This document shows positions 9,438 through 62,109 of a DNA stretch of 64,000 nucleotides, one piece after another. Within the stretch, counting starts at the first letter, position 1, and each line of letters begins with the position of its first letter. The notes below the pieces were generated by a model. It worked only from the letters and a program-made list of their open reading frames with translations. It ran no database searches and was not told where the DNA came from. Origin of the DNA: Podarcis pityusensis. Its lineage: Eukaryota. The position numbers and the translations under genes are program-made. Location: the NCBI GenBank assembly GCA_964106645.2, contig OZ067044.1; one strand, written 5' to 3'.

Positions 9438-10210
9438 GCCTGCTCTAGAACATTTGCTGCATCCCTCTTTCCACACAATATCAGGTACCTTTAATAGGGG
9501 GACTGTGGGATTTGGTAGATCAGAATTTTTTTGGGTTGGGGGACTGGTATTTCAACTAGTAGAAAACAACCACAGAGTTCCTGTGAATGCATCAAATCAC
9601 TTCAGGAATTTGGATAAGGATTTTTTGAATCCCTGCCAGACAAGAACTTTCTATAAAACGTTAAAACTTGCTACTAGCTGCTTCTGTCATTTATAATTAG
9701 AAATTATAGTAAATGATTCAGACAGTCTGAAATATTGCTTTTTGTTTGAAAAATAGTAACAGAAAAATTGTTAATGATATTACTCTTTTTTTTAAAAAAA
9801 GGAACTTTGATTTTTGTACATGTAAGATTGTGGAAGATATACTGGTATCTTGTTAGGTAAGGTGTTAAAAATACCGAAGTGTAAGTATATTATGAAACTG
9901 AGGGAGGTGAACATTTCAAATTCAATTTTCATTAACACAAGTTAATGAGGTGAAAAATGTCCTGTCTATTTTTTAAAACGGAAGCAAAAAATGCCTCAGG
10001 TAATGTTGCAGAGTAAGCAACATAAGCCAACTACAATCTCTGCTTCACTTCTATTTCATTAAAATTCCAAGATGTCAGTAGATCTCAGGTTGCTATAGAA
10101 AAGATTTCTCAAGCAACACTGTTTAAAAGGTACTAACAAAGTGTACTTCCTCATAAAACATATCCCCACCCTCCCCCAGCTCTATATATTAATCATGTGT
10201 CCAGCTAGAG

Positions 10211-10345
10211 CAGGCATCCCCAAACATGGCCTCCAGATGTTTTGGGACTACAACTCCCATCATCCCTAGCTAACAGGACCAGTGGTCAGGGATGATGGGA
10301 ACTGTAGTCCCAAAACATCTGGAGGTCCGAGTTTGGGGGTGCCTG
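10211..10345. mobile_element. hAT (Charlie-like) MITE with 8-bp TSD
   Basis: TIRs CAGGCATCCCCAAAC / GTTTGGGGGTGCCTG; TSD agctagag at 10203-10210 and 10346-10353; internally palindromic. Confidence 0.9.
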
Positions 10346-10852
10346 AGCTAGAGGTTTCTTTGAAGTTTTCATGGAAGCAGAGTTCTGACACTGGGAGCTG
10401 GTAAAGAGTGAACACCTTTTTAAAAAGCAAAACCCATCCATTTGTGCATGGAAGGGGTGTTTGCACAACAACAAAGTGTAGCATTATAATAATCAAACTG
10501 GGAAATCCTTGGATATTTCTAATCTCTACCAATACAATAAATAAATCCAAGTTTTCATTCTAACATGTGATTATTGTCAAAGGTAAAATAAAAGGCCCAT
10601 AGAATTGATTCAATTATTTGGCTAAAATGTTCTTCTTGCATGCTTTCTTCAAGCTTTCCTGACTGGTAAATGCAAACAATGGTACTATTTATATGTAATA
10701 AAGAATAATAATAGCAGGAAATAGCATGAGGCAAATTTAACTATTTCACTTTTGTAAACTGGAGATGCTGAGGTTTAAGTATCAATCTGAATTGATTCTG
10801 TTTTGTCTAAAATGTATTATTATTGTTTCCTCTTTTACATCTGAATATCTAC

Positions 10853-10969: not shown

Positions 10970-12389
10970 CTGAAGAAACAAAACCATCAATGTCATGAAG
11001 GCGGAAATGAGCAGTTCTCTTTAAAATGAGCCCTGTTAATGAAAATGTTAGCTGTAACCTTTAACATCCTTGACTCTGACGAAATCTGTTCAAAGCTGAT
11101 ATGATTGGTTGCCTATGCATACATCTTATATAAAAATTGGCATGTACTGCCTTCTCGCTGAGGGGAAAAATTTGAAGAAGAAAAAATCAGACTCAAGGTA
11201 GGGAAGAGTTGGGAAATCTGCACCAGGAATATTTTCACCCCCTCTGTCATGATCCACAAACAATTCACTGCAATATTTAATTTTACTGCACATCACTTAG
11301 CCAATGCCATCTAAAAACAAAATGTGAAATCTACATAATTAACATTCCATTTCAGACAAAAGTGTGCAAATTGGAATTATTTATGCAAAATAAACATCAT
11401 TTGCCAACCAAACACTTATTAAACCTGAAAACCTGGAGATTTATTAGTTATTGTCCATTTCTTGATCATGGTTAAGGCAGGAAGGAAAGGAATGTGCAAT
11501 CCTGTGCCTGGCTTCTGATCATTTAGCCATGATTAAAAGTGCCAGTGTTGCATCTGCACCAGCACAGTATTGTTTTATTTGAATTATACAAAATATGATT
11601 TAGATGTTTTCCTTATGCTGGATATTTTTAAGAGGGGTACACAACACTCAACTCTTCATATTATCTTTCTCTCCTTTAGCAAGGACAGGTGGTTAAATGC
11701 CTGTCAGTTTAAACAATAACCATGGCCATCCCAAATTAAGGAAGCAATTTCTAAATACTTGGGGTACACACTGAGGAAGCATATCTGTCAATTAATAGAA
11801 AAATAAAATATGAAACAGCCCTGTAGGCATCCAAGACATTCAGAATAGAGATAAGGAAAAGCTAAACTAAGTCATCTCACTGTCAGAAGGGGGAATTTCC
11901 AGGTTCACAATGGACCACAATAAGGAATTCATGTCTGCTGCTACCTTTTGGTGCGGGAGTCTCCCACTAAAGCTCTGAACAGACTTGCTTAGCAATAACA
12001 AGGTAGTTGCATTATGTGTCCTCAGATCATGGCTGATTACTAAGAATGGCTTAAGCCTTGAGCAGGAGCAGTCCTGTAAATTTGGAGACTTAGTCACTTT
12101 TTCCTGATACCCCATAACACTAGCGTCCAGTTTGCCCATGTACAGGAAAAAATAAACTCATTCAGATACTGTACTTCCTAATCTAACTAAATGTGGCTGT
12201 GGAATCTATGGTCAAAGAGGCAGGGTGCAGAAGTCTCTCCATATATTGACTTAGCTGCTGTATCACAGAAAGTTTTAGGGGGGAAGTTTCACACAGAATT
12301 TGGGGTAGTTTTGCTTGGAACAATGAAGATAATTGAAGTTCAGATACCCAGAAGAGACTCTTCCATCTACATCCCATAGACAAATCTCT

Positions 12390-12525
12390 CAGGGTTTCTC
12401 AAACTTGGGTCTCCAGCTGTTTTTCGACTTCAACTCCCATCATCCCTAGCTAGCAGGTCCAATGGTCAGTGATGATGGGAATTGTAGTCCAAAAATAGCT
12501 AGAGACACAAGTTTGGGAAACTCTG
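12390..12525. mobile_element. hAT MITE related to 10211-10345
   Basis: cagggtttctcaaactt ... aagtttgggaaactctg; shared core caactcccatcatccctagcta...gatgatggga. No TSD recognisable. Confidence 0.75.
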
Positions 12526-15410: not shown

Positions 15411-16766
15411 CACCATGTTCAAAGATTTTCCATAGCCCGGCATTCTTATTGGCTCTCATTTCAACTCCATGTCAAACTTTTCTTTAAAACAAACAAACAA
15501 AACCTTGTTCAGCCCACTGCTGACTTTTGTCCTGTTTTCTTGAGCCACAGTGACTCCCAAAAATATTCCCTAATGGAATTTCTATATGCATCTCCTCCAC
15601 TTTTGCCAACAACATGTGGCGTTGGTGCTTATGTTCTGTCTGAGTTTTTAAATAATTTTCTCCTTTCCTCATTCTTTATCTTTTCCACAGGCTCCCTTTG
15701 CATATATTGTCCATTCCTTAACCACCATGACTTAGGCCTACTGGTTTTATAATTTCCCTATTGCACTTGCTCTTCCCCCATATAGTTCTGCAGTCCTCAG
15801 TATACTAATCCCTATAATTCTGAGTGGGTCTAATCCCAACCAAACTTTCACTTTTTAAATAAAAAGCTGGGCTGTTCATGAACATTGTACAGTACTGTTA
15901 AAAGTTTAATTAACTCTGCAGTTGAAATGCCACTGAACATTCCATGACATCACAGAATTACCGCTAAGATGGGTGGCTAGATGACATATTCCTAGCCCCA
16001 TACATCAGCCTTTGCCAACAGAGATTGTTCCAATAAACGGTATTGCCTCACTTATTTTGAATCATTTAATTTCCTGTACATCAGTATCCACTATGAGAAT
16101 TAAACTAAACATTCAATAGTCAACATAAAAAATATGGGGGGGGGGGGGAATTCATGGAGGTTACAGTAAAGTATGAATTCAAATTTTCATTTATCAGGTT
16201 TAAAATAAAGTGATCCCTTACTTGGAAAATACTAATTTGTGGTATGTTACAGCTAATATGCTCATAATGCATTTTCACTCGTTCCATGGGGGAGCCCATT
16301 AGCGCTGCTAACACTTAGTATCTTAATTAAAAATCTGGAAGGCTGGGGGAGGTTGAAAATATGCCCATTCAATGTGCTGATTATATTATACAGGGAGCTA
16401 TTACAGAAACAAGGGAAGACAGAAAAACCATGAGACAGCCTTAAGAGAGCTTCAGCCTTTAAAAATGCAACTTAATACATCTAAGGCATAGGAATCAGCA
16501 AAATTATTTGCAGGGCAGTAACCATATCCATTACCTTTAGCAGAAGGCACAGATTTACAGCAGTCTTACTAAATTTATAGGTTCTCAGTAGCTGTTAAGA
16601 ATTGATTTTGGAAACTGCCAGTCCAATGATACATTACAAACAAAAGCGCTTTAGGAGGGGGCAATTTGGAGCAGAAAAGTAGCAGGAAATACTGCTTCCC
16701 TGTTCCATATTGCCTCACTCAAGCCACTTCTCCTGCCATGGGATTGCAAACTGGAAATGTGATTTG

Positions 16767-18935
16767 TTGTTGTTTTTTTTAAATAATATTTATTAGTAGT
16801 TTCAGAATTATAGAAAATAAAGAAAAAATAAAAAACAACACAATAATACATAAAAAAGACCAAAAAAACCGGAGAAACCAATACAACAGTATAGCAAAAA
16901 GATAAAAAAGGAAGACAAAAAAAACCACAAATCCCAAATTACATATCTATAACTTCCATTTGCTTGTTTAATTGACCTCCTCACACCTCCCTTCTTGCAT
17001 TCTAGTTCAATTAGTTATTTCAGCAAATTCTTTCCATCTTTCTCAATTTTTGTTACAAAATTTATCTTAACACTTTAACCTAATAATTAGCTCAACAAAT
17101 CCTTTCCATCTTTCCCCATATTCTGCTATTCAAATTACCTTAGTTTATTTAACCTTATCTTACCCTAAAATACCTTAAAACTTAAATCTTAGTTTTCAAA
17201 TATACATAACTCCTGGTATCATTTCTGCTAGAGTCATATAGTTTCATTCCAACATTTTCCCTAATATTCATCAATTTTAAGCTAATTCCCTAAATAGAAA
17301 GTTTTTATTTATATTTTTTTTCCAATCTTCATCCAATGTCTCTTCTTCCTGGTCTCGGATCGTGTCAGTCCTTACTGTCTATTCCATCTAGTCCATCAAC
17401 CTGGAAGCCTTATGTCCGAGGCCCTTAAGTCTCTTCCATGTCCCTTCTGCAGATCTTCTTCTTCTTGTTTATACTTGCCCTTTTCCTTGTCTTTTGTTGG
17501 TCTCTTTCTTAATTTCTTTCCTTTCTCATTGTGAAGTAGGTCTCTGGGGAATTCCAACCCAAAATTGTCTCCATCACTCTTCATCAAACCCGCCCATTCC
17601 CCACAGTCCCACTCCCCACAGTCATCGATATAATCCAAAAAGTATTTAAAAGCATATTTCCAGGTCTCTCCAAAGTTAGGAACCTCCTCAGCTCCAAACT
17701 CCCCCTGGCCCACTCCAACTTCAATCTTCAATGACAGCGGCTTATGCTCCTGTAGGGCCTCGGGTCTCTCCATTTGTATTATTTGAGGTGCAACCGCATC
17801 CTCCTCCATTATCTTCTGCACTTGCCCAGACAGTACAGGTTCATGAGTTGGTCCCTGAATGATTTCTGTATCAATGTTCCCTGTTTGTCCACAGTTATTA
17901 ACCACAACAGTCATCAAATCCATTTTCTCATTCATCAAATCCATCTTCTCGTGCATCTGTTCCAGCAAGGCACTTGTCTTGCATAGAGCAAGCACCCAAT
18001 CTTCCTCCCAGCTCATCTTTAGTCAAGGTCAGAAGAGACTGATCCCACGATCTTAATCTCACAGCTGTTGAGTCTTCAAGTATACTGCAGCAACAATTTA
18101 ACAAGCTCCCTCTAGAGGAGACAATTTCTATTTGTATCCATTTTTTTTTTTTTAAGGCAAGTCCAACAAAGGAAAATTACTTTCATTTTTCAGATATTTT
18201 GTTTCTTTAGAATGCAAAAGGCAACATTGGAATCAGTTTGTTTCTCTTCTTTAACTATCTGTCAAAGTATTCCATTCACAGTCGATGAACCTCTCCAACG
18301 ATTTCTGTCTCTGACACCCCGTTCCCAGGTTAGAGACGGTGGAAACTTATCCTTCTTCACTCCCTTACCTGCTAGGGTTGAACAAAGTTCCCCCCCTTTT
18401 CTTCTGCTTCCAAGGGGGTTTCAGTAATTCTAAATGAAGGAAATTTAAACTTTTTTGACAGCTTTCCAGGCTTTAGCTTACAAAATTTTTGCTTTAGTCT
18501 ATATACAAAAAGCGGAAGGCGGACTTCCTGTTTTGAACCTTCCCGCTTCGATGCCAAATTGAGATATTTCTTAATCCAATTTTCCGTTTCTACTCACGGG
18601 TACTTGTTTTAAATCCAATTGTCCCCAGGAAAAAGTCAGCGCTCTCCGGCAATGGCTGTGCGGCTTCACTCCGTGAAAATAGCAATCAGTTCGCAGCACC
18701 ACGCCACTCACCCCACTTCGCTCCGGTGCCCCAAAATGGGGTTCCCGGTGAGTGGGGGGGGCGCTCCTGGTGCCCTGCCAAACCCCACATTCCCAGGCTT
18801 CCTCCGCCTGGGATTTCTAGCGGGTCCCCACCTTCGCCGCGGTGGGAAGACCCAGTTTCCATGGAGCCCGTTCCTCCGATCGGAGGAACTCCGCCATTCA
18901 CCGATGGCGCTGACCCGGAAGTCCCGCTTTGAAGA
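16767..18935 (-). mobile_element. Full-length non-autonomous L1-derived retroelement (HAL1-like architecture)
   Basis: 5' end ...gcgggacttccgggtcagcgcc...atggcgg (L1-type, CpG-rich); one 206-aa ORF; decayed L1 ORF2 C-terminal remnant (about 17310-17400); 3' UTR homologous to the L1 at 48008-49125; AATAAA plus A-tail; candidate TSD gtgatttg at 16759-16766 and 18936-18943. Confidence 0.8.
17396..18016 (-). CDS. 206-aa ORF of the non-autonomous element; N-terminal heptad/coiled-coil-like segment, acidic middle, basic C-terminal patch
   Basis: ATG-initiated, uninterrupted, located at the L1 ORF1 position; LLEQMHEKMDLMNEKMDLM heptads; KGKKLRKRPTKDKEKGK basic patch. Translation not demonstrated. 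Confidence 0.55.
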   Translation of the reverse strand: MSWEEDWVLALCKTSALLEQMHEKMDLMNEKMDLMTVVVNNCGQTGNIDTEIIQGPTHEPVLSGQVQKIMEEDAVAPQIIQMERPEALQEHKPLSLKIEVGVGQGEFGAEEVPNFGETWKYAFKYFLDYIDDCGEWDCGEWAGLMKSDGDNFGLEFPRDLLHNEKGKKLRKRPTKDKEKGKYKQEEEDLQKGHGRDLRASDIRLPG

Positions 18936-19000
18936 GTGATTTGGAGTAGAGAAGCATCAGTCAAGCAAAGAGTCAAGCACTGTCTCTCTCTGCCACATGT

Positions 19001-20780: not shown

Positions 20781-21939
20781 GAAGGCTATTTAGATTCCAG
20801 AGGTCTGGAAGCAAGCTGAGAAGTTCCAGCACAGAAAGAAGGAACAACGAGGAAAGAAATGTTTGTCAGCATCTCTACAAAGAAACTCTTTCTCTTCAAA
20901 GTGCTCTCCTGGCACAAAGACTATTGAATTGAATGTGGTTTCCACTGACAATATTTCTTTATGTAATATTTGCTAAGAAATACCAACTAAATGGGTACAA
21001 ACTAGATGGGTTTTTCAAACAAATAAAGTATAAAAAAATTAACACGTGCCAATCAGTACTGTGTAAAATCCCTCATCCTAAACATCCTGAACTATTTCCT
21101 AGAAGAGCTCTCACCTCCAAGCTTTCATGAGTATTTTCTTCTGAGCTGTCATCTTCTGGACTGAATGTCATACACACATTTCCTCCTTATGAATGATAAT
21201 GCATATCAAAATATGGCACAGCTATTTGACACTAACAGGGTAAAAGCAGTCCAGTTTCCCATTTCATGACAATATGCTACTGCTAGTGAGAATGAATTGC
21301 AGATATGGTCACTGTACTACATGAACCTAATTTGAAACTGATTCTGGAACTAGCACTCTGTTTGATGACAAAAAGGAACAATGAATAGGTACTTCCCATT
21401 CTTTTAACATGATGATTTAGAGACCATTTGTGCAGTGTGCCTAGGTCCTATAAACTGATCTGCTTTAAACATGCTACTAAAATCCAGAATGGATGTAACA
21501 TCTGCTTACTAAATATGCTCTAAGGGAACTGCTAACAATAAAATGTTCTTATGCCAAATAACTATATCTCTCTATGATGTACTTAACAAAGCTCAGGCAA
21601 AAGTGAAGCTAACAAAATCCCAATAGGGGATGACAGCAGTTATGATGAGCTGCCTACAACCACTGTGGTTGGATAGCATATTTAGTTTGTAGCTGTACTT
21701 GCTGTTGGGGCTCCTGCATAAGATAGCAGAGTTGTGCCTTCCTATATTTCAAAGTGTTAAACTATTTACATGCCAGAAGAGATGGGGAGGGGGAGGGGAC
21801 AGAAAAAGCAGCTTGAAGTAAAACATACCATGTGATACCTACACTCCTTAGAAGGAATTAACATTTCCACTTGCTCAACACTTCTGTTGGGATTCCAGAT
21901 CCCATTGGCATGCCAAGTTACCTCATGGCATGTCTAAAC

Positions 21940-23588
21940 ATGGTGTGTGGAGTGCCGCAGGGCGCAATCCTCTCCCCGATGCTTTTTAACATCTTTATAC
22001 GCCCCCTTGCCCAGATTATCTGGAGCTTTGGGCTGGGCTGCAGTGGCGTAGCGTGGGGGGTGCCAGGGGGGCCGGCCGCACCGGGCGCAACATCTGGGGG
22101 GGCGCGCTCGCTGCCTCCGGAGTCGCCGAAGAGCCTCGGGCGCAGGCTGTAGCAGAGCCCCATGTCTCGTGGAACCGACGAGCTGTGCGCGCGCCCGGGC
22201 TGAAGGCGTCCGGCAGGCAGCGGCTCTCAGCCCCGCGCGTCAGGGCCGCGGAGGACGTGCCAGGCAGCCCCTCCTCACAGCCCCGCCTCCGCTGCTGCTG
22301 CTGCTGGGCCATGTTGCATTTTCCTCGCCTCTCTGCCCCCCTCCTCCTCCGGGCAAGCGGCGTGGTTTGGGCGGCAGCGCCAGCAGCAACTCGACTCAGA
22401 TCGGCAGGTTAGGGGTTGGGGGGGGCGCAAATTACTTGCCTTGCCCCGGGTTAGGGGGCGCAAATTACTTGCCTTGCCCCGGGTGCTGACAACTCACGCT
22501 ACGCCGCTGCTGGGCTGTCACCAATATGCTGATGACACTCAGCTCTATCTGCTGATGGATAGCCACACCGACTCAGCCCCGAACGCATTGACCAGATGCT
22601 TGGAAGCTGTGGCGAGATGGTTTCGTGGGAGCCAATTGAAACTAAATCCTTCGAAGACAGAGGTCCTATGGCTGGGTCGGGATGACATGGGGATGAGGGA
22701 CCAACTCCCTTCTCTTGCGGGGGCCCAATTAGTGCCATTGCCTTCTGTTAAGAGTTTGGGTGTAATCCTTGACGCCTCCCTTCCCAAGGAGGCGCAGGTT
22801 ACAGCAACAGCCAAGGCGACATTTTTCCACCTTTGCCGCATCAAGCAATTGGTCCCTTACCTTTCCCGCCCCGACCTGGCCACAGTGATCCATGCGATGG
22901 TCACCTCCAGGCTTGACTACTGTAATTCGCCCTACGCGGGGCTGCCCTTGAAGCTGTCCCAGAAACTCCAGCGGGTGCAGAATGCTGCAGCGAGGCTCCT
23001 CACGGGGTCTCTGCCATGGGAGCATATTCACCCGGTGCTTTTCAAGCTGCACTGGCTCCCGGTGAAGTACAGGGTCAGATTTAAGGTGCTGCTTTTGACC
23101 TTTAAAGCCCTTCACGGCCTAGGACCCTCGTACCTATGGGACCACCTCTCCCGGTATGCCCCACAGAGAGCCTCAAGGTCCATAAATAGCAACACCCTAG
23201 TGGTCCCGGGCCCTAAGGAAGTTAGATTAGCTTCAACCAGAGCCAGGGCCTTTTCAACTCTGGTTCCGGCCTGGTGGAACGCTCTGCCTCATGAGACCAG
23301 GGCCCTGCAGGATCTGATTTCTTTCCGCAAGGCCTGTAAGACAGAGTTGTTCCGCCTGGCCTTTGGCTTGGAGCCAATTTGATTCCCTCCCTCTCTTTCT
23401 TTTTTCTTTTCCTTCTCCTCCTGCGATGAGGCATTTTAATATTTTAATGTTTCAATATTTTAATGTTGTATTTTAATTTTGTTTTACGTTGTAATCATTC
23501 AACTTGTTTTTATTATTGCTTGTTAGCCGCCCTGAGCCCGGCCTTGTCTGGGGAGGGCAGGGTATAAATAAAAAATTATTATTATTAT
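21940..23588 (+). mobile_element. L2-clade LINE, 5'-truncated, RT domain to 3' end, interrupted by a MITE
   Basis: CGVPQGAILSPMLFNIFIRPL...GLGC | HQYADDTQLY...KLNPSKTE...SRLDYCNS...LQRVQNAAARL...LHWLPV...FRKACKTELF; 3' end gccgccctgagccc...gggtataaataaaaaa(tta)n. Confidence 0.92.
22041..22509. mobile_element. GC-rich hAT MITE nested in L2, 8-bp TSD
   Basis: TIRs CAGTGGCGTAGCGTG / CACGCTACGCCGCTG; TSD ctgggctg at 22033-22040 and 22510-22517; internal duplication ggggcgcaaattacttgccttgccccggg x2. Confidence 0.93.
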
Positions 23589-31093: not shown

Positions 31094-33099
31094 CTGTAAT
31101 TGAGAAGTATAAATTAAGTGTTGCTATTCCATTGAATATGTGATTTATAAAACAAATGACTGCCAGAAGAAGATGACAAAGGCTTGCTTGAGACTTGCCT
31201 TCAGAAACTTCTTTGCAAATATATACAGCAAATACAAATGAATGCTCACAAGACCCCAATACTTTTCTATATGTAGGCATGTTCCTTATATTGTCTGAAG
31301 TAATGCTTTTTAGGCTGAAATTCTTTGAGTGTTCAATGGGGCTCACCCCCGGTTAATGGGTTCTAGCCAAATAAATGAGAGTAAATCCACTGAAATTAAT
31401 ATACCTATGTTAGTCATGCCTATTAATTTCATTGGGACTACTCTGAGTATGACTAACACTTAATGCAACCCAGTGTGCAGGGTAGCCCTCCAGATGTTTT
31501 CAGATTCCAAATCTCAGTATGTCCAAACAGCATAGCCAATGGTCAAAGGTGATGGAAGTTGAGTCCAGTAATATCTGGAGGGCAACACATTGGCTGCCCT
31601 TGTGTGTAGGACTGTATATGACTGTGCTGTTAATTTAATACTGCATAGGAGTCTGGTGTTAGCTTCATATTTCAGGAACAGGCCAGTATCCAAATAGCTT
31701 TTTTACACATATCTAATGACATTATTTTACTTGTTTCTTGAAACAGCAGACTCAGGTGACATACTAGAAACAATTAACATTCCTGTTCCAAAAATGGTTT
31801 GCCATTTGGCACTTGGGAGTGCTTTTTGAGAAATCCAGTGCCTCCTTAGGTATGCAAAACTAGTGCGCAGTCCTTTGGATCCAATCCTTGGTCTAGTTGT
31901 TTACACAATGAACATGGTCATCTTCATCATCTTCATCTCTTTATTTTTAGGCTAATTTTCCAAAGAACTGTGCCCAAAGTGGCTTACAACATTATTGCAG
32001 AGTAAACTTTCATGCGTAAGTCCAAATAAAATGCAGTTAGTCTTTAAGGAGCCACAGAACACTCTTTTAGTATTATTGTAAGAGATGAACATGGATCTTC
32101 CCTACTGAAATTGCTAATACACCTATGTATAAACTTCTGCTAAGTTTATTTTTAAAACAGCACCTCAAGACAAGATTTATTATCACTGGCACAACTTAAT
32201 CTAAGTTGATAAAAGAAATGGCTCTCTGGATCTTACCCAATGACAGAATCAAACAACTTACTTCAGAGTAGCTCTCTTATTATAACTAAACTCCTTTGGA
32301 ATATGTGGATTTTTTAATGTAGCCTTAATGACTTTATTTTAGACACTAAAGATTTGTTTACTTTGGAGAATTGAACTAGGTTATATTGGACAAGTTTCTC
32401 CTGTATAATTTGTTTAGTCAGAACTTCACAGCCTCACCTAATTAAATGCTTGAGTTGTTTAATTGCACTTTATTTCTAGCAGGTTATTTTTCCATATAAA
32501 GTAGATTTATTTTTGCCTACTAAGCTTATTCTTCCGGGGGTGGGGGAGGCAGGGGAGAGACTGCTTCACTGTTAGAAGAAAACAAATTCAATAGAACAAG
32601 CTACTTTTACTTTTGAACTTGAAAGGAAACACCCAGAGTAATTAAAGGAAAACATCTACACTATTTGCCTTAAAAGAAAAGCAACAACTGTGAAAATTAT
32701 AAAAAGGAAACATACGGCACTATAATTTCAAAGTGTGTACATTCTGGCACTTTCTTAATAATTAATAATAAACAAATTGCATTTCTTCTATACGTACATA
32801 GTATACGTATATGATACACCTACAGATGGTAAATTGCTTGGAAAAAATGCTTTCTGATAAAGATATCATAGCAGTGCCTTTTAACTGGCCCAATATATTG
32901 TGTGTGGGGGTGGGAATTATATGAACACTGACAGCATATTGCAAACTAGTATCAAAATTACCACAAGATTCAAAAACAAAATGTCACAATTTTGTCTCAT
33001 GTTTAAAATACCTAATTTGGATAGTTATAAGAATTCATAGCTGGTTGAAAATTGCACGTTCTAAGAAATATGGATAGTTCTAAAAAACTGAAATCACAT

Positions 33100-33150
33100 A
33101 CAGCAAAGCAAAGAAAAGCAAAGAAAAGAAAAGAAAAGAAAAGAAAAGAA
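33100..33150. repeat. (AAAAG)n/(AAAGC)n microsatellite
   Basis: aaagcaaagaaaagcaaagaaaagaaaagaaaagaaaagaaaag. Confidence 0.85.
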
Positions 33151-34198
33151 GGAAAACATCCAAGTGACAATGTGCTCTTCCATTTTTTCCATTTGCACAA
33201 ACATCTCTGCTTAGCCACTAGAATGATTCTCCCTCTCCTCCTACACCGCATGCTGTTCAAGGGGTCATTCTGACTCTCTCCAGATACAATTTCAAGGCAT
33301 GTGGGGGGAAGACAGGTGGGGAAAACCCTACTGAACAAGCAGAAGTTCTTACACAGGGCTTTCAGTGGCAGGGCTGGTTAGATTAATCCCTACTACAGTT
33401 AATGTAGTTATACAAAGTTATTTTTTTACTGATCACTGACCATAATAAAGAGGTTGATCAACTGATGGTTATATAAATAGCGAATTACTAAGATTTGGCA
33501 TCTCTCCCCCTCCTGCCACAATTTATTTCTCTTGATCAAGTTTCTCTTGGGCTTTAGCAAAAAGCACTGCCAAATCCAAGGTGTTCCGGCTCTTGCAGCA
33601 GGTTCAAGGCCAATGGGACTCCACTTGCTCCCCACTGCTTCAGCTCTGGACCCATAACAAAGATCGTCAAGCATGCCATCTGCTCAAACTTCTTTGATGA
33701 CTTCCAAGGTCAGATAGTAGACATGGTCTTGCGCTTGCTGAAGAAAAACAAGCCGTAGGCCGCTTGCATTCATTCTGCCACTCACATTTCTAACTGCACT
33801 AGGAGGGCAGTGTGCATGTGCAGCCTTTACCAATCTAGAAGGCCTGTAGGACAGCGTGGGGTTGTTCTGAATCATCATATTTTCCTGCCACTAAAGACCC
33901 TGTAAAATATCTCTGTAATTCTCAACATCCACTCACAAATTCTCATTAAGGGTTATGGAAATATATAAGATTGTTCATTGGGTTAACCAGGATTACTGCA
34001 AGCTACCACCATAGTCAACATTCCTTTCTCAAATGTCTGAGAAAAGCATAGTTATTATTACTTAGATAAACAATGGTAATCTGAATAGGCACATCATTCA
34101 GTAACTGAGATATTATGACCAATACTAGTTACCAAACATTACTATTTTTTCACAGAAATTTAATTTAAAGCAGTTAAGCCTTTTTTTTTCCATCCTAC

Positions 34199-47779: not shown

Positions 47780-48007
47780 CGCACACAGTTTAGGCCAACC
47801 TTCCTACACTCCCACTATTGTAATTGTTGTTGTTGCTACCACTGTTGGGGGGATGCGAATGAAGAGGATAAAGACTTTTGTCCTTCCCTGTTGTCACCGC
47901 GCCCCAACCAGAAAGAAGCCTGGATATTGCAGTGTGGTGGTAGCTGCAGGGTGGATGGGGTGAGGGGAAGAAAGGCTTTGTTCCCTTTATTCCCCTCCTC
48001 CTACCAA

Positions 48008-49125
48008 AAAACTAGGCTTCCAGGTGGAAAAATCAAAGTTGGAAACAGAATTGTTAGACCCTAAAGTTAAGAATTTGTCAAGAATGTATAACTTGCTGTT
48101 AAAATGGAATACTCAAGATGAAATGGTGAAATCTGCTATGATTAAATGGGCACAAGATGTTGGACATAATATTATGATGGCTGACTGGGAACAGTTATGG
48201 ACCACTGGTATGAAGTTTACGGCATGCAATGCCTTAAAAGAGAATTTAATGAAAATGATTTATAGGTGGTACATAACACCAGTCAAGCTTGCAAAAATCT
48301 ATCATTTGCCCGATAATAAATGTTGGAAATGTAATGAAACTGAAGGTACATTCTTTCACCTTTGGTGGACATGCCCAAAGATTAAGTCATTCTGGGAGAT
48401 GATCTATAATGAAATGAAAAAGGTATTTAAATATACCTTCCTGAAGAAACCAGAGGCCTTTCTCCTGGGCCTGGTCGGCCAATTGGTGCCAAAGAAAGAC
48501 AGAACTTTCTTTATGTACGCTACAACAGCAGCAAGAATACTTATTGCAAAGTATTGGAAGACACAAGATCTACCCACCAGGGAAGAATGGCAGATGAAGC
48601 TGATGGACTACATGGAACTGGCGGAAATGACTGGCAGAATTCGAGACCAGGGAGAAGAGTCGGTGGAAGAAGATTGGAAAAAATTTAAAGTATACTTACA
48701 GAAACATTGTAAAATTAATGAGTGTTAGAAGGATGCTGGAATGAAGCTATATGGTTTTAGTAGAAATGCAACAAAGAATTAAGTAAAAGCTGATTGATAA
48801 TGGGTTAAAATGAAAAAATTCAAGGTTAGACCGTTAAGATAAATTATAGAATAAAAATTGAGAAAGATGGGAAGAACTTGCTGAAATAGTGAATTGAACT
48901 AGAATACAAAAAAAGGGAGGTGTGAGGAGGTCAATGAAACAAGTAAAGGAAAGGTAAAGATATGGAAAATTGGATGTCTGTTTTAGTTTCTTCTTTGTTT
49001 TTCTTTTTTGCTGTATTGTTGTATTGCTTTTATATGTTTTGTTATTGTTTTTTCTCTTTTTTATTGTTGTTTTTTTTCTTTTTTCTGTAATTTTTAAACT
49101 TTTAATAAATATCATTTTAAAAAAA
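48008..49125 (+). mobile_element. Young 5'-truncated L1 (L1/Tx1 group) insertion, ORF2 C-terminus plus 3' UTR, 19-bp TSD
   Basis: Open 234-codon frame 48024-48728 with CCHC motif CWKC-x8-H-x4-C (CWKCNETEGTFFHLWWTCP); AATAAA plus A-tail; TSD attcccctcctcctaccaa at 47989-48007 and 49126-49144. Confidence 0.93.
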
Positions 49126-50215
49126 ATTCCCCTCCTCCTACCAATGGTAGAAGGACAGGGGGTTGGGGGAGCTGTGAGGAGATGGGGAAGAGAGGTTTGG
49201 AGGAAGGTATAAAAGAAAAGGAGGTGGTTGGCAATGGGCTGGTATGGTGGCAGGAAGTAGCTGCTGACAGGCAGTCTTAGCAAGCAACACAAGCTCTAAT
49301 CTATAACTTTAGGCTTACAAATGAATCAAACGAGGGACTATTTGCTTTTTATACTTAAATCAAAAGGGGGAATTTGGGTTTGAATTCCAAGAGTTCATTC
49401 TTAGGAAAATCATTAAACTCATCTGTGAGTTTAAACTCATGTGGGAATAACTAGTGGGATGAAAAATTGATTTTATTTATTTGTTTAAAATGAATAGTTT
49501 TTTATATTATTAAACTATCCTCAGAGTGACTAAAAAAATCAAACAATTAGATACTCTAAAACTAATAATACAAAACTAGAACCGCCGTTCTGAATAAATA
49601 CCGACAAAGTCACATGGAGATTAAAAGCCGTCGATGTTCATTAAAAGTTTGGGTAAACAGGACAGACTTAGCATGGTACCGGAATGATTATGATACAGTC
49701 ATGTCATCAGACCAGACTTCTCTGGATACCAAATTCCAAAACTGTGAACCGTCACTGAGGCCCTCTCTCTAAAAACCATCTGCATAGCCTCCAAAGATGG
49801 AGAAATATGGCCTTAGAAGATTTTGTTAATCAGAAGTCATTTTCATGTGGAACATGAAGGGCTTCAATCTCAGTCAAAAGCAGCACTTTAAACTCTGCCC
49901 AGAAATACATTGAAAACTAATGCAGATCTTTCAATATTGGCAAGATATGATAAATTCTAGTTAAATAAATCTGACAGATAACTTTTGAACTAGTTGATAT
50001 TTCCAAGCACTTCAAGAATAGCCCCCCATAGAACAGACTGCAGTAATCAAGAAAGGTACCAAAGCAAGAAGGAGGAGGCAAGCTGAGATTAAAGAAGCTG
50101 ATTCGTTACGGAACATTCATATGTACAGAAACAAAGCTGTGAAATTCAGTTTGGAGCCTAATTTTGTCATGCCTGTGTATATTCTAAACAATTCATGAAG
50201 GGAACCTGTACTTAC

Positions 50216-61047: not shown

Positions 61048-62109
61048 CAGTGGTGCCCCGCAAGACGAATGCCTCGCAAGACGGAAAACCCGCAAGACGA
61101 AAGGGTTTTCTGTTTTGGAGGCGCTTCGCAAGACGAATTTCCCTATGGGCTTGCATCGCAAGACGAAAGCCCATAGGGAAATGCTGGCGGTCGGGAGCAA
61201 AGACTTTCGCCCACAGCCGGCCTTCAGAAGAGGACCTCTTCTGAAGGCCGGCGGGGGGCAAAAGTCTTTGCTCCCCCCCGCCTGCCTTCCCCCCGCCTGC
61301 CCCGGGCGATCTTAAAATGCTGGCGGGCGGGAGCGAAGCGTTCGCTGCCGACCCCCAGCATTTTAAAATCTCCCCCTGTCCCGGGGAGATTTTAAAATGC
61401 TGGGGGTCGGGAGCGAAGAGTTCACTGCCGACCCCCAGCATTTAAAAATCTCCCCGGGACAGCAGAGAAGTCTCTGCTGTCCCGGGGAGATTTTAAAATG
61501 CTGGGGGTCGGCAGCGAACGCTTCGCTCCCGACCCCCAGCATTTTAAAACGCTGTTTCGAAGCGGGGCGGGGGGCGGGAACACCTGCCCCAGCCGCCCCA
61601 CTTCGTAACACTGTTCCGAAGCGGGGCGGGGGGCGGGAACACCTGCCCCAGCCGCCCCGCTTCGGAACGCTGCTCCGAAGCGGGGCGGGGGGCGGGAACA
61701 CCTTCTGAAGGCGGGCGGGGGGCGAAAGTCTTTGTCCCCCCTGCCTGCCTTCCCAGGGGCTTTTAAATCGCCCCGGACAGCGGAGAAGTCCTCCGCTGTC
61801 CGGGGCGATTTTAAAATGCCGCCCGCCAGCATTTTAAGATCGCCCGGACAGCGGAGAAGTCCTCCGCTGTCCTGGGGTTTTTTAAAATGCTGGGGGTGGG
61901 AAGAAAAGCCCTTGTCCCCCCCCCCCCCCGACTTCAGAAGAGGTCCGGGGACAGACTGTCCCCGGACCTGGTCTGAAGGCGGTTTCCCTAGGAACGCATT
62001 GATTGATTTTCAATGCATTCCTATGGGAAACCGTGCATCGCAAGACGAAAAACTCGCAAGACGAAGAGACTTGCGGAACGAATTAATTTCGTCTTGCGAG
62101 GCACCACTG
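61048..62109. mobile_element. Large non-autonomous Tc1/mariner (Tigger/pogo-like) element with TA TSD and palindromic interior
   Basis: ta|CAGTGGTGCCCCGCAAGACGAA ... TTCGTCTTGCGAGGCACCACTG|ta; repeated subterminal cgcaagacg motif; no transposase ORF. Confidence 0.92.
61559..61702. repeat. 59-bp GC-rich tandem repeat, about 2.4 copies
   Basis: Unit gaagcggggcggggggcgggaacacctgccccagccgcccc(a/g)cttcg...ccg inside the Tc1/mariner element. Confidence 0.9.

Follow-up and report, generated by a model that had tools for sequence, protein, structure and literature searches.

The window (the whole stretch of DNA that was analysed, 64,000 nucleotides of Podarcis pityusensis with zero N) contains exons of the host gene RIMS2: an exon at 50339-50216 (minus) matches the RIMS2 PDZ domain in PDB (E 5e-20), and four further minus-strand stretches recognised by eye (51551-51452, 30058-29905, 23774-23706 and 13969-13813) are presumably exons of the same gene. 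One RIMS2 intron houses, in sense orientation, the L1-related insertion that concerns us here (Table 1); a second L1-related copy, at 48008-49125, runs antisense to RIMS2. Other repeats were also noted in the window. A non-LTR fragment at 21871-23382 (plus) includes the C-terminal portion of its reverse transcriptase (RVT_1, E 2e-5); a GC-rich insert near 22000-22480, with a 31-nt direct repeat at its bounds, apparently interrupts the fragment. The array at 61176-61926, which is GC-rich and consists of direct and inverted repeats nested in one another, probably represents the inside of a DNA transposon, and two short palindromic, MITE-like repeats at 10205-10347 and 12388-12517 are present in the flanks of two sibling insertions, L001 and L002, described below. 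An nhmmer match at 33085-33269 was rejected as a T-rich repeat.

Table 1. Features of the insertion and of the L1 copy with which it is compared
Feature	Position	Strand	Remarks
Whole insertion, 2169 nt, full-length, subfamily A	16767..18935	minus	84% to full-length sibling L002 over 2157 columns, gaps included
TSD, 5' copy, 8 bp	18936..18943	minus	
TSD, 3' copy, 8 bp	16759..16766	minus	
11 additional nt that separate the TSD from the L1 start motif	18925..18935	minus	8 additional nt in L003 and none in L002
Lizard clade-1 L1 start motif, GACTTCCGG then ATGGCG	18892..18924	minus	spacer longer than in anole consensus
CpG-rich head	18524..18924	minus	GC 0.57, 26 CpG, o/e 0.82 (first 400 nt)
908-nt leader	18017..18924	minus	90% to L002, 78% to L003
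Two short motifs, GTGGGA and GACCTTG	18024..18048	minus	just 5' of the ATG in 7/7 copies
206-aa ORF, intact	17396..18016	minus	
Dead L1 ORF2 remnant, ~43 last codons	17261..17402	minus	overlaps the ORF stop codon
L1-type 3' UTR with T-rich stretch	16781..17260	minus	AATAAA at 16794-16789
Short A-tail, A8 then CAACAA	16767..16780	minus	
5'-truncated L1 of a related family, comparison element outside the insertion	48008..49125	plus	last ~234 ORF2 codons open; 19-bp TSD 47989-48007 / 49126-49144

The structural features that an earlier note had described for this insertion are all where it had placed them, barring the length of the ORF2 remnant. Its L1-type, CpG-rich 5' end comprises a clade-1 start motif and a CpG-rich first 400 nt; its leader of ~900 nt measures 908 nt; and its intact 206-codon ORF is open from 18016 to 17396 and encodes 206 aa. 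The AATAAA, the A-tail and the candidate 8-bp TSD are likewise present, direct repeats of this kind flanking the insertion (18943-18936 / 16766-16759) having a chance probability of ~0.008. No endonuclease or reverse transcriptase had been seen, and none is encoded: ORF listing, Pfam and translated comparison yielded no EN/RT frame in 16767-18935. The 11 extra nucleotides at the 5' end may be untemplated, may reflect an upstream start, or may be what is left of a degraded longer TSD.

At the 5' end, GGACTTCCGG begins at 18924 (minus) and ATGGCG occupies 18897-18892, an arrangement that agrees, in a comparison of the motif alone, with the consensus of lizard clade-1 L1 except for its longer spacer (PMC5381506). 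The clade-1 L1 of Anolis thus shares with our element its 5' start motif and a long CpG-rich leader; the leader here, however, is 0.9 kb long with one CpG-rich region, against ~1.3 kb and two such regions in Anolis (PMC5381506), and the element is without ORF2 or a canonical ORF1. We presume that the CpG-rich head is an internal Pol II promoter. The leader contains seven upstream ATGs in the window copy and 3-7 across copies, some of which could be removed from the mRNA if the leader were spliced. A donor-like GTGAGT (18600-18592, minus) and an acceptor-like pyrimidine tract with a CTAG end (18120-18110, minus) were observed in the leader, both conserved across subfamilies. As for the two short motifs just before the ORF, we take GTGGGA to resemble an RBPJ site and GACCTTG an SF-1/ERR half-site; alternatively, the two could act in the RNA, as reinitiation signals. 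The region around the ORF start codon showed no stable RNA structure. There is also an out-of-frame ATG behind an A-run ~125 nt 5' of the ORF (window 18141, minus; L002:3880; L005:201; absent from L003), and it may be an old ORF1 start. A 106-aa ORF in the leader was rejected as a gene, because a protein search with it matched nothing but itself.

At the other end, the stop-containing tail of L1 ORF2 reported in the earlier note is present, although it is ~43 codons long and not ~30: tblastn (E 5e-5) aligns 29 codons, 59% identical and interrupted by two stops, ahead of a frameshift, and the DNA similarity extends beyond the ORF2 stop. The claimed homology of the 3' UTR to the 48-kb L1 is borne out, the ORF2 remnant and 3' UTR together being 79% identical to 48599-49125, a value that is about equal for subfamilies A and B (see below). 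From this resemblance of its ORF2 tail and 3' UTR to the L1 in the window, the 48-kb copy shows the kind of L1 that donated the element's 3' end. It had been called a partner-type L1 in the same gene; both copies do lie in RIMS2, but a 5'-truncated relative that is only 79% identical is a candidate partner at most. The 3' UTR further contains an internal duplication of ~60-70 nt (17142-17012, minus) that is missing from the 48-kb L1. A metagenome scan with the ORF2 tail returned only distant L1s (27-30%).

Relatives of the element were located via protein searches, by way of their intact annotated proteins, a route that is biased to open frames; the searches returned relatives only from Podarcis lilfordi (87%, 76-78% and 34% identical) and from three sequencing-run contigs. 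The copies fall into subfamilies A (the window copy, L001 and L002), B (L003, L004 and L006) and C (L005), which are 25-35% apart in DNA, with identities between subfamilies of 71% in the ORF and 78% in the leader; A and B both occur in P. lilfordi. The three P. lilfordi insertions L001, L002 and L003 have the element in common with the window but, common repeats aside, not their flanks, either with the window or with each other. L001 is 5'-truncated and sits in an intron of a DUF5580 gene; L002 is full-length and lies inside a zinc-finger coding stretch; L003 is full-length and represents the second subfamily. The TSDs are 8 bp in the window, 16 bp in L001, 18 bp in L002 and 14 bp in L003, and those of the siblings all open with an A-run preceded by pyrimidines, which fits L1 endonuclease sites. 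TSDs of variable length, an A-tail, 5' truncation and cuts at pyrimidine/A-run junctions are marks of target-primed reverse transcription by L1. At L002:2600-5500 we observed in addition that the C2H2 zinc-finger coding stretch is split, that the annotated gene ends at the insertion, and that the 106-aa 'gene' is called in the leader.

These siblings bear directly on whether the window merely contains a single L1 that was deleted after insertion, or an assembly artefact. The short (8-bp) TSD of the window copy and its 11-nt offset could be read that way; however, the same internal junction and ORF recur at three further loci, each with its own TSD, and this explanation is effectively refuted. 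The earlier note had named the lack of any sibling with the same junctions as a finding that would speak against a mobile family, and had looked to many near-identical copies as its support. The same structure with individual TSDs was indeed found at three loci, although the accessible siblings, which come from other assemblies, are ~89-90% identical to the element and not near-identical. Because siblings occupy unrelated loci with their own TSDs, one of them 5'-truncated, we regard the element as a mobile family without a reverse transcriptase of its own, and almost certainly one of L1-dependent elements in lacertids. It may be inside existing automatic RepeatModeler libraries of Podarcis, and an unnamed repeat consensus that covers it may exist.

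Another key observation is that the ORF has been kept under constraint. A codon model was used in place of Nei-Gojobori values, since the latter ignore transition bias. Applied to seven copies from three subfamilies, it gave an omega of 0.53 (p 5e-8 against omega 1), a value to be read with the small sample of seven sequences in mind and with deep alignments that are protein-guided, which lowers omega; the other five frames scored 0.84-1.55 and contained 34-88 stops. Subfamily B alone gave an omega of 0.50 (p 3e-4); subfamily A alone (0.62, p 0.034) is not decisive because its +2 frame scores equally. Constraint is highest at the two ends of the protein, that is, at an N-terminal heptad helix and a C-terminal motif of 15 residues: omega is 0.38 for residues 1-40, 0.62 for 41-100, 0.72 for 101-165 and 0.19 for 186-206. 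In four close pairs compared at the DNA level, which are partly dependent, there are 6 indels in 2368 columns of ORF and 34 in 2590 columns of UTRs; four of the six in the ORF are multiples of three, against 5/34 in the UTRs (Fisher p 0.016), while the other two ORF indels add up to 18. Furthermore, a neutral frame of 206 codons would stay free of stops at 0.27-0.35 substitutions per site with a probability of only 0.001-0.003.

It is very improbable, and in our view largely refuted, that the ORF is a neutral passenger in a non-coding, internally deleted L1 and that its intact copies are a search artefact. Ascertainment through protein search, the weak signal in subfamily A and the premature stop in the ORF of one copy (L006) all lean that way; yet the omega is specific to the frame, indels are depleted, and the start region, the frame and the stop are common to three subfamilies that are 25-35% apart in DNA. 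Ascertainment may select intact tips, but does not easily explain what the subfamilies hold in common. A subtler possibility is that selection acts on translation and not on the protein, an open frame that ends near the 3' UTR keeping the RNA stable and ribosome-bound for capture by ORF2p. The near-neutral drift of the protein's middle, with many in-frame indels but the frame kept, and a structure model that is mostly low-confidence or disordered are compatible with this idea. We nevertheless consider it quite unlikely, given that amino acids are constrained at either end of the protein (omega 0.38 and 0.19) and given the pattern in the last 16 codons, where 11 synonymous alternatives, among them CTT/TTA/TTG for Leu and an exchange of TGA and TAA as the stop, stand against 6 amino-acid alternatives. 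The ORF thus very probably encodes a selected protein. Taken with the siblings, their individual TSDs and the 5' truncation, this upholds the proposal of the earlier note that we are dealing with a squamate L1-dependent family that has both L1 ends and a protein of its own.

The protein itself has a helix at residues 3-38 with a heptad pattern, an acidic middle that is, to judge from the model, probably disordered, and a basic C-terminus that ends in the nearly invariant 15-residue motif; in subfamily A the N-terminus bears an exact duplication of one heptad. Its net charge is acidic (-6 to -16), unlike that of an RNA chaperone. An AlphaFold model (pLDDT 43) comprises the helix 3-38 and zero strands and is too poor for fold matching. 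Searches of Pfam, PDB and Foldseek with the protein were blank, a profile found nothing in PDB at E up to 10, and Atlas yielded no match either (score 0.79, unnamed). Among 1.84 billion representative proteins there was no homologue outside the family; P0006, a nematode Ig-domain protein with 30 residues matched, was rejected as a low-complexity match.

As a control we used a distant L1 ORF1p from L008, a source that is not human and that we judge to be probably fish. The control recovered human ORF1p in PDB at E 6e-12, scored 0.95 in Atlas and has strands in its model; Pfam missed it too, so the blank Pfam result for the 206-aa protein carries no weight. No similarity of the 206-aa protein to any ORF1p was detected, including in comparison with the L008 ORF1p, and the RRM/CTD-bearing ORF1p that defines HAL1 was not detected in it, whereas the control was detected easily. 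Bearing in mind that the RRM and CTD are conserved in every vertebrate L1 family examined, lizards included (PMC5381506), we conclude that they are absent from this protein or eroded past recognition.

Where, then, does the protein come from? The ORF occupies the position of ORF1, opens with heptads and includes the exact duplication of one heptad, even though comparison with the distant L008 ORF1p was blank, and on such sequence features we give descent from ORF1 an even chance. The alternative is that the protein is not ORF1-derived but originated in the distal 5' UTR, in out-of-frame L1 or in captured DNA, and that it acts as an accessory factor (one that, for example, inhibits host silencing or serves as a decoy for it). 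Similarity to ORF1p is absent by every method; the ORF starts at 0.9 kb, against a mean of 1.3 kb for the 5' UTR of anole clade-1 L1 (PMC5381506); and the ORF diverges more between subfamilies (71%) than does the leader (78%). In addition, the last 12 nt before the stop (17410-17399, minus) match shifted-frame L1 ORF2 (48014-48025, plus) exactly, one base out of frame, with a p of 0.0008 for the last 40 nt of the ORF and 0.058 for the whole ORF. It is possible that this match represents an old deletion junction, but it was noticed post hoc and is limited to subfamily A, being absent from B and C. Given also the ORF1 position and N-terminal heptads, and the zero cellular homologues in 1.84 billion representative proteins, a non-ORF1 origin appears to us unlikely. 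Similarly unlikely is a broader version, that of a long-lived lineage of L1 parasites in which ORF1 was replaced by a protein of other origin (either new or assembled from pieces of out-of-frame L1) whose conserved C-terminal motif would bind a host silencing factor or the machinery of the helper L1; if true, this would be a LINE parasite with a genuine accessory gene and not a trimmed ORF1.

The reading that we favour, and hold to be moderately probable, is that of a protein-coding, non-autonomous L1 derivative of lacertids, with an adaptor in the form of an eroded ORF1p, that is mobilised in trans by L1. The L1-type CpG head would drive a Pol II poly(A) RNA; ORF2p of an autonomous clade-1 L1 would bind the L1-derived 3' end in trans, as the ends and the insertion marks suggest, and this helper ORF2p would use target-primed reverse transcription to insert the RNA. 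The protein of ~200 aa would most likely be a heavily eroded ORF1p that has lost its RRM and CTD, and it would serve as a two-ended adaptor between its own RNA and the helper particle: the N-terminal heptad helix may pair with the coils of helper ORF1p or self-associate, a free acidic linker would connect this helix to the C-terminus, and the conserved C-terminal motif may bind a fixed partner, either in the L1 particle or in the host. Since it is translated from that RNA, the protein would favour its own RNA. The adaptor role, to which we assign slightly less than an even chance, follows a proposal made for HAL1, HeT-A and Ag-Sponge (PMC5786205); non-autonomous LINEs that keep ORF1 probably multimerize with helper proteins (Kojima, PMC5786205).

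How does this family relate to known systems? The HAL1 (half-L1) elements of mammals encode ORF1p (Smit 1999, Bao and Jurka 2010, as summarised in PMC5753468 and PMC5786205). Our element resembles them in being non-autonomous and derived from L1, in keeping both L1 ends, in having a single ORF but no EN/RT, and in its L1-type insertion marks; it differs in its host, a lizard and not a mammal, and in its protein of ~200 aa, which is acidic, without known homologues and without a detectable RRM/CTD. The earlier label of HAL1-like therefore holds for the way of life, both L1 ends and a selected ORF included. It does not hold for membership: because HAL1 encodes ORF1p, and the search for an RRM/CTD-bearing ORF1p failed where the control succeeded, we do not file the element as HAL1. 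HeT-A (Jockey clade) and Ag-Sponge (CR1 clade) are likewise single-ORF LINE parasites whose protein is thought to join the helper particle, but they belong to other LINE clades and encode a protein that can be recognised as ORF1/Gag (PMC5786205). The RIME, NARTc, Bov-A and Vingi derivatives also retain both ends, 5' and 3', of the LINE from which they stem (PMC5786205), but they are non-coding, whereas the element here is L1-derived and has a selected ORF; the only clades with reports of such ORF-less bipartite LINE derivatives are RTE, Ingi, Vingi and R2 (PMC5786205). In the literature searched, which included few subscription papers, no lizard family of this kind is described, nor did we find a paper on a reptile HAL1.

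The finding extends HAL1-like parasites to reptiles. Coding LINE parasites that have been reviewed keep a recognisable ORF1p (PMC5786205); here, the protein that three subfamilies have retained lacks the RNA-binding RRM/CTD, and the constraint on it is limited to a short coil and a C-terminal peptide. This protein offers a small, testable construct for asking how a non-autonomous RNA beats the cis preference of L1 proteins. For those who work with lizard genomes, it also means that some 'hypothetical proteins' in lizard annotation are copies of this element.
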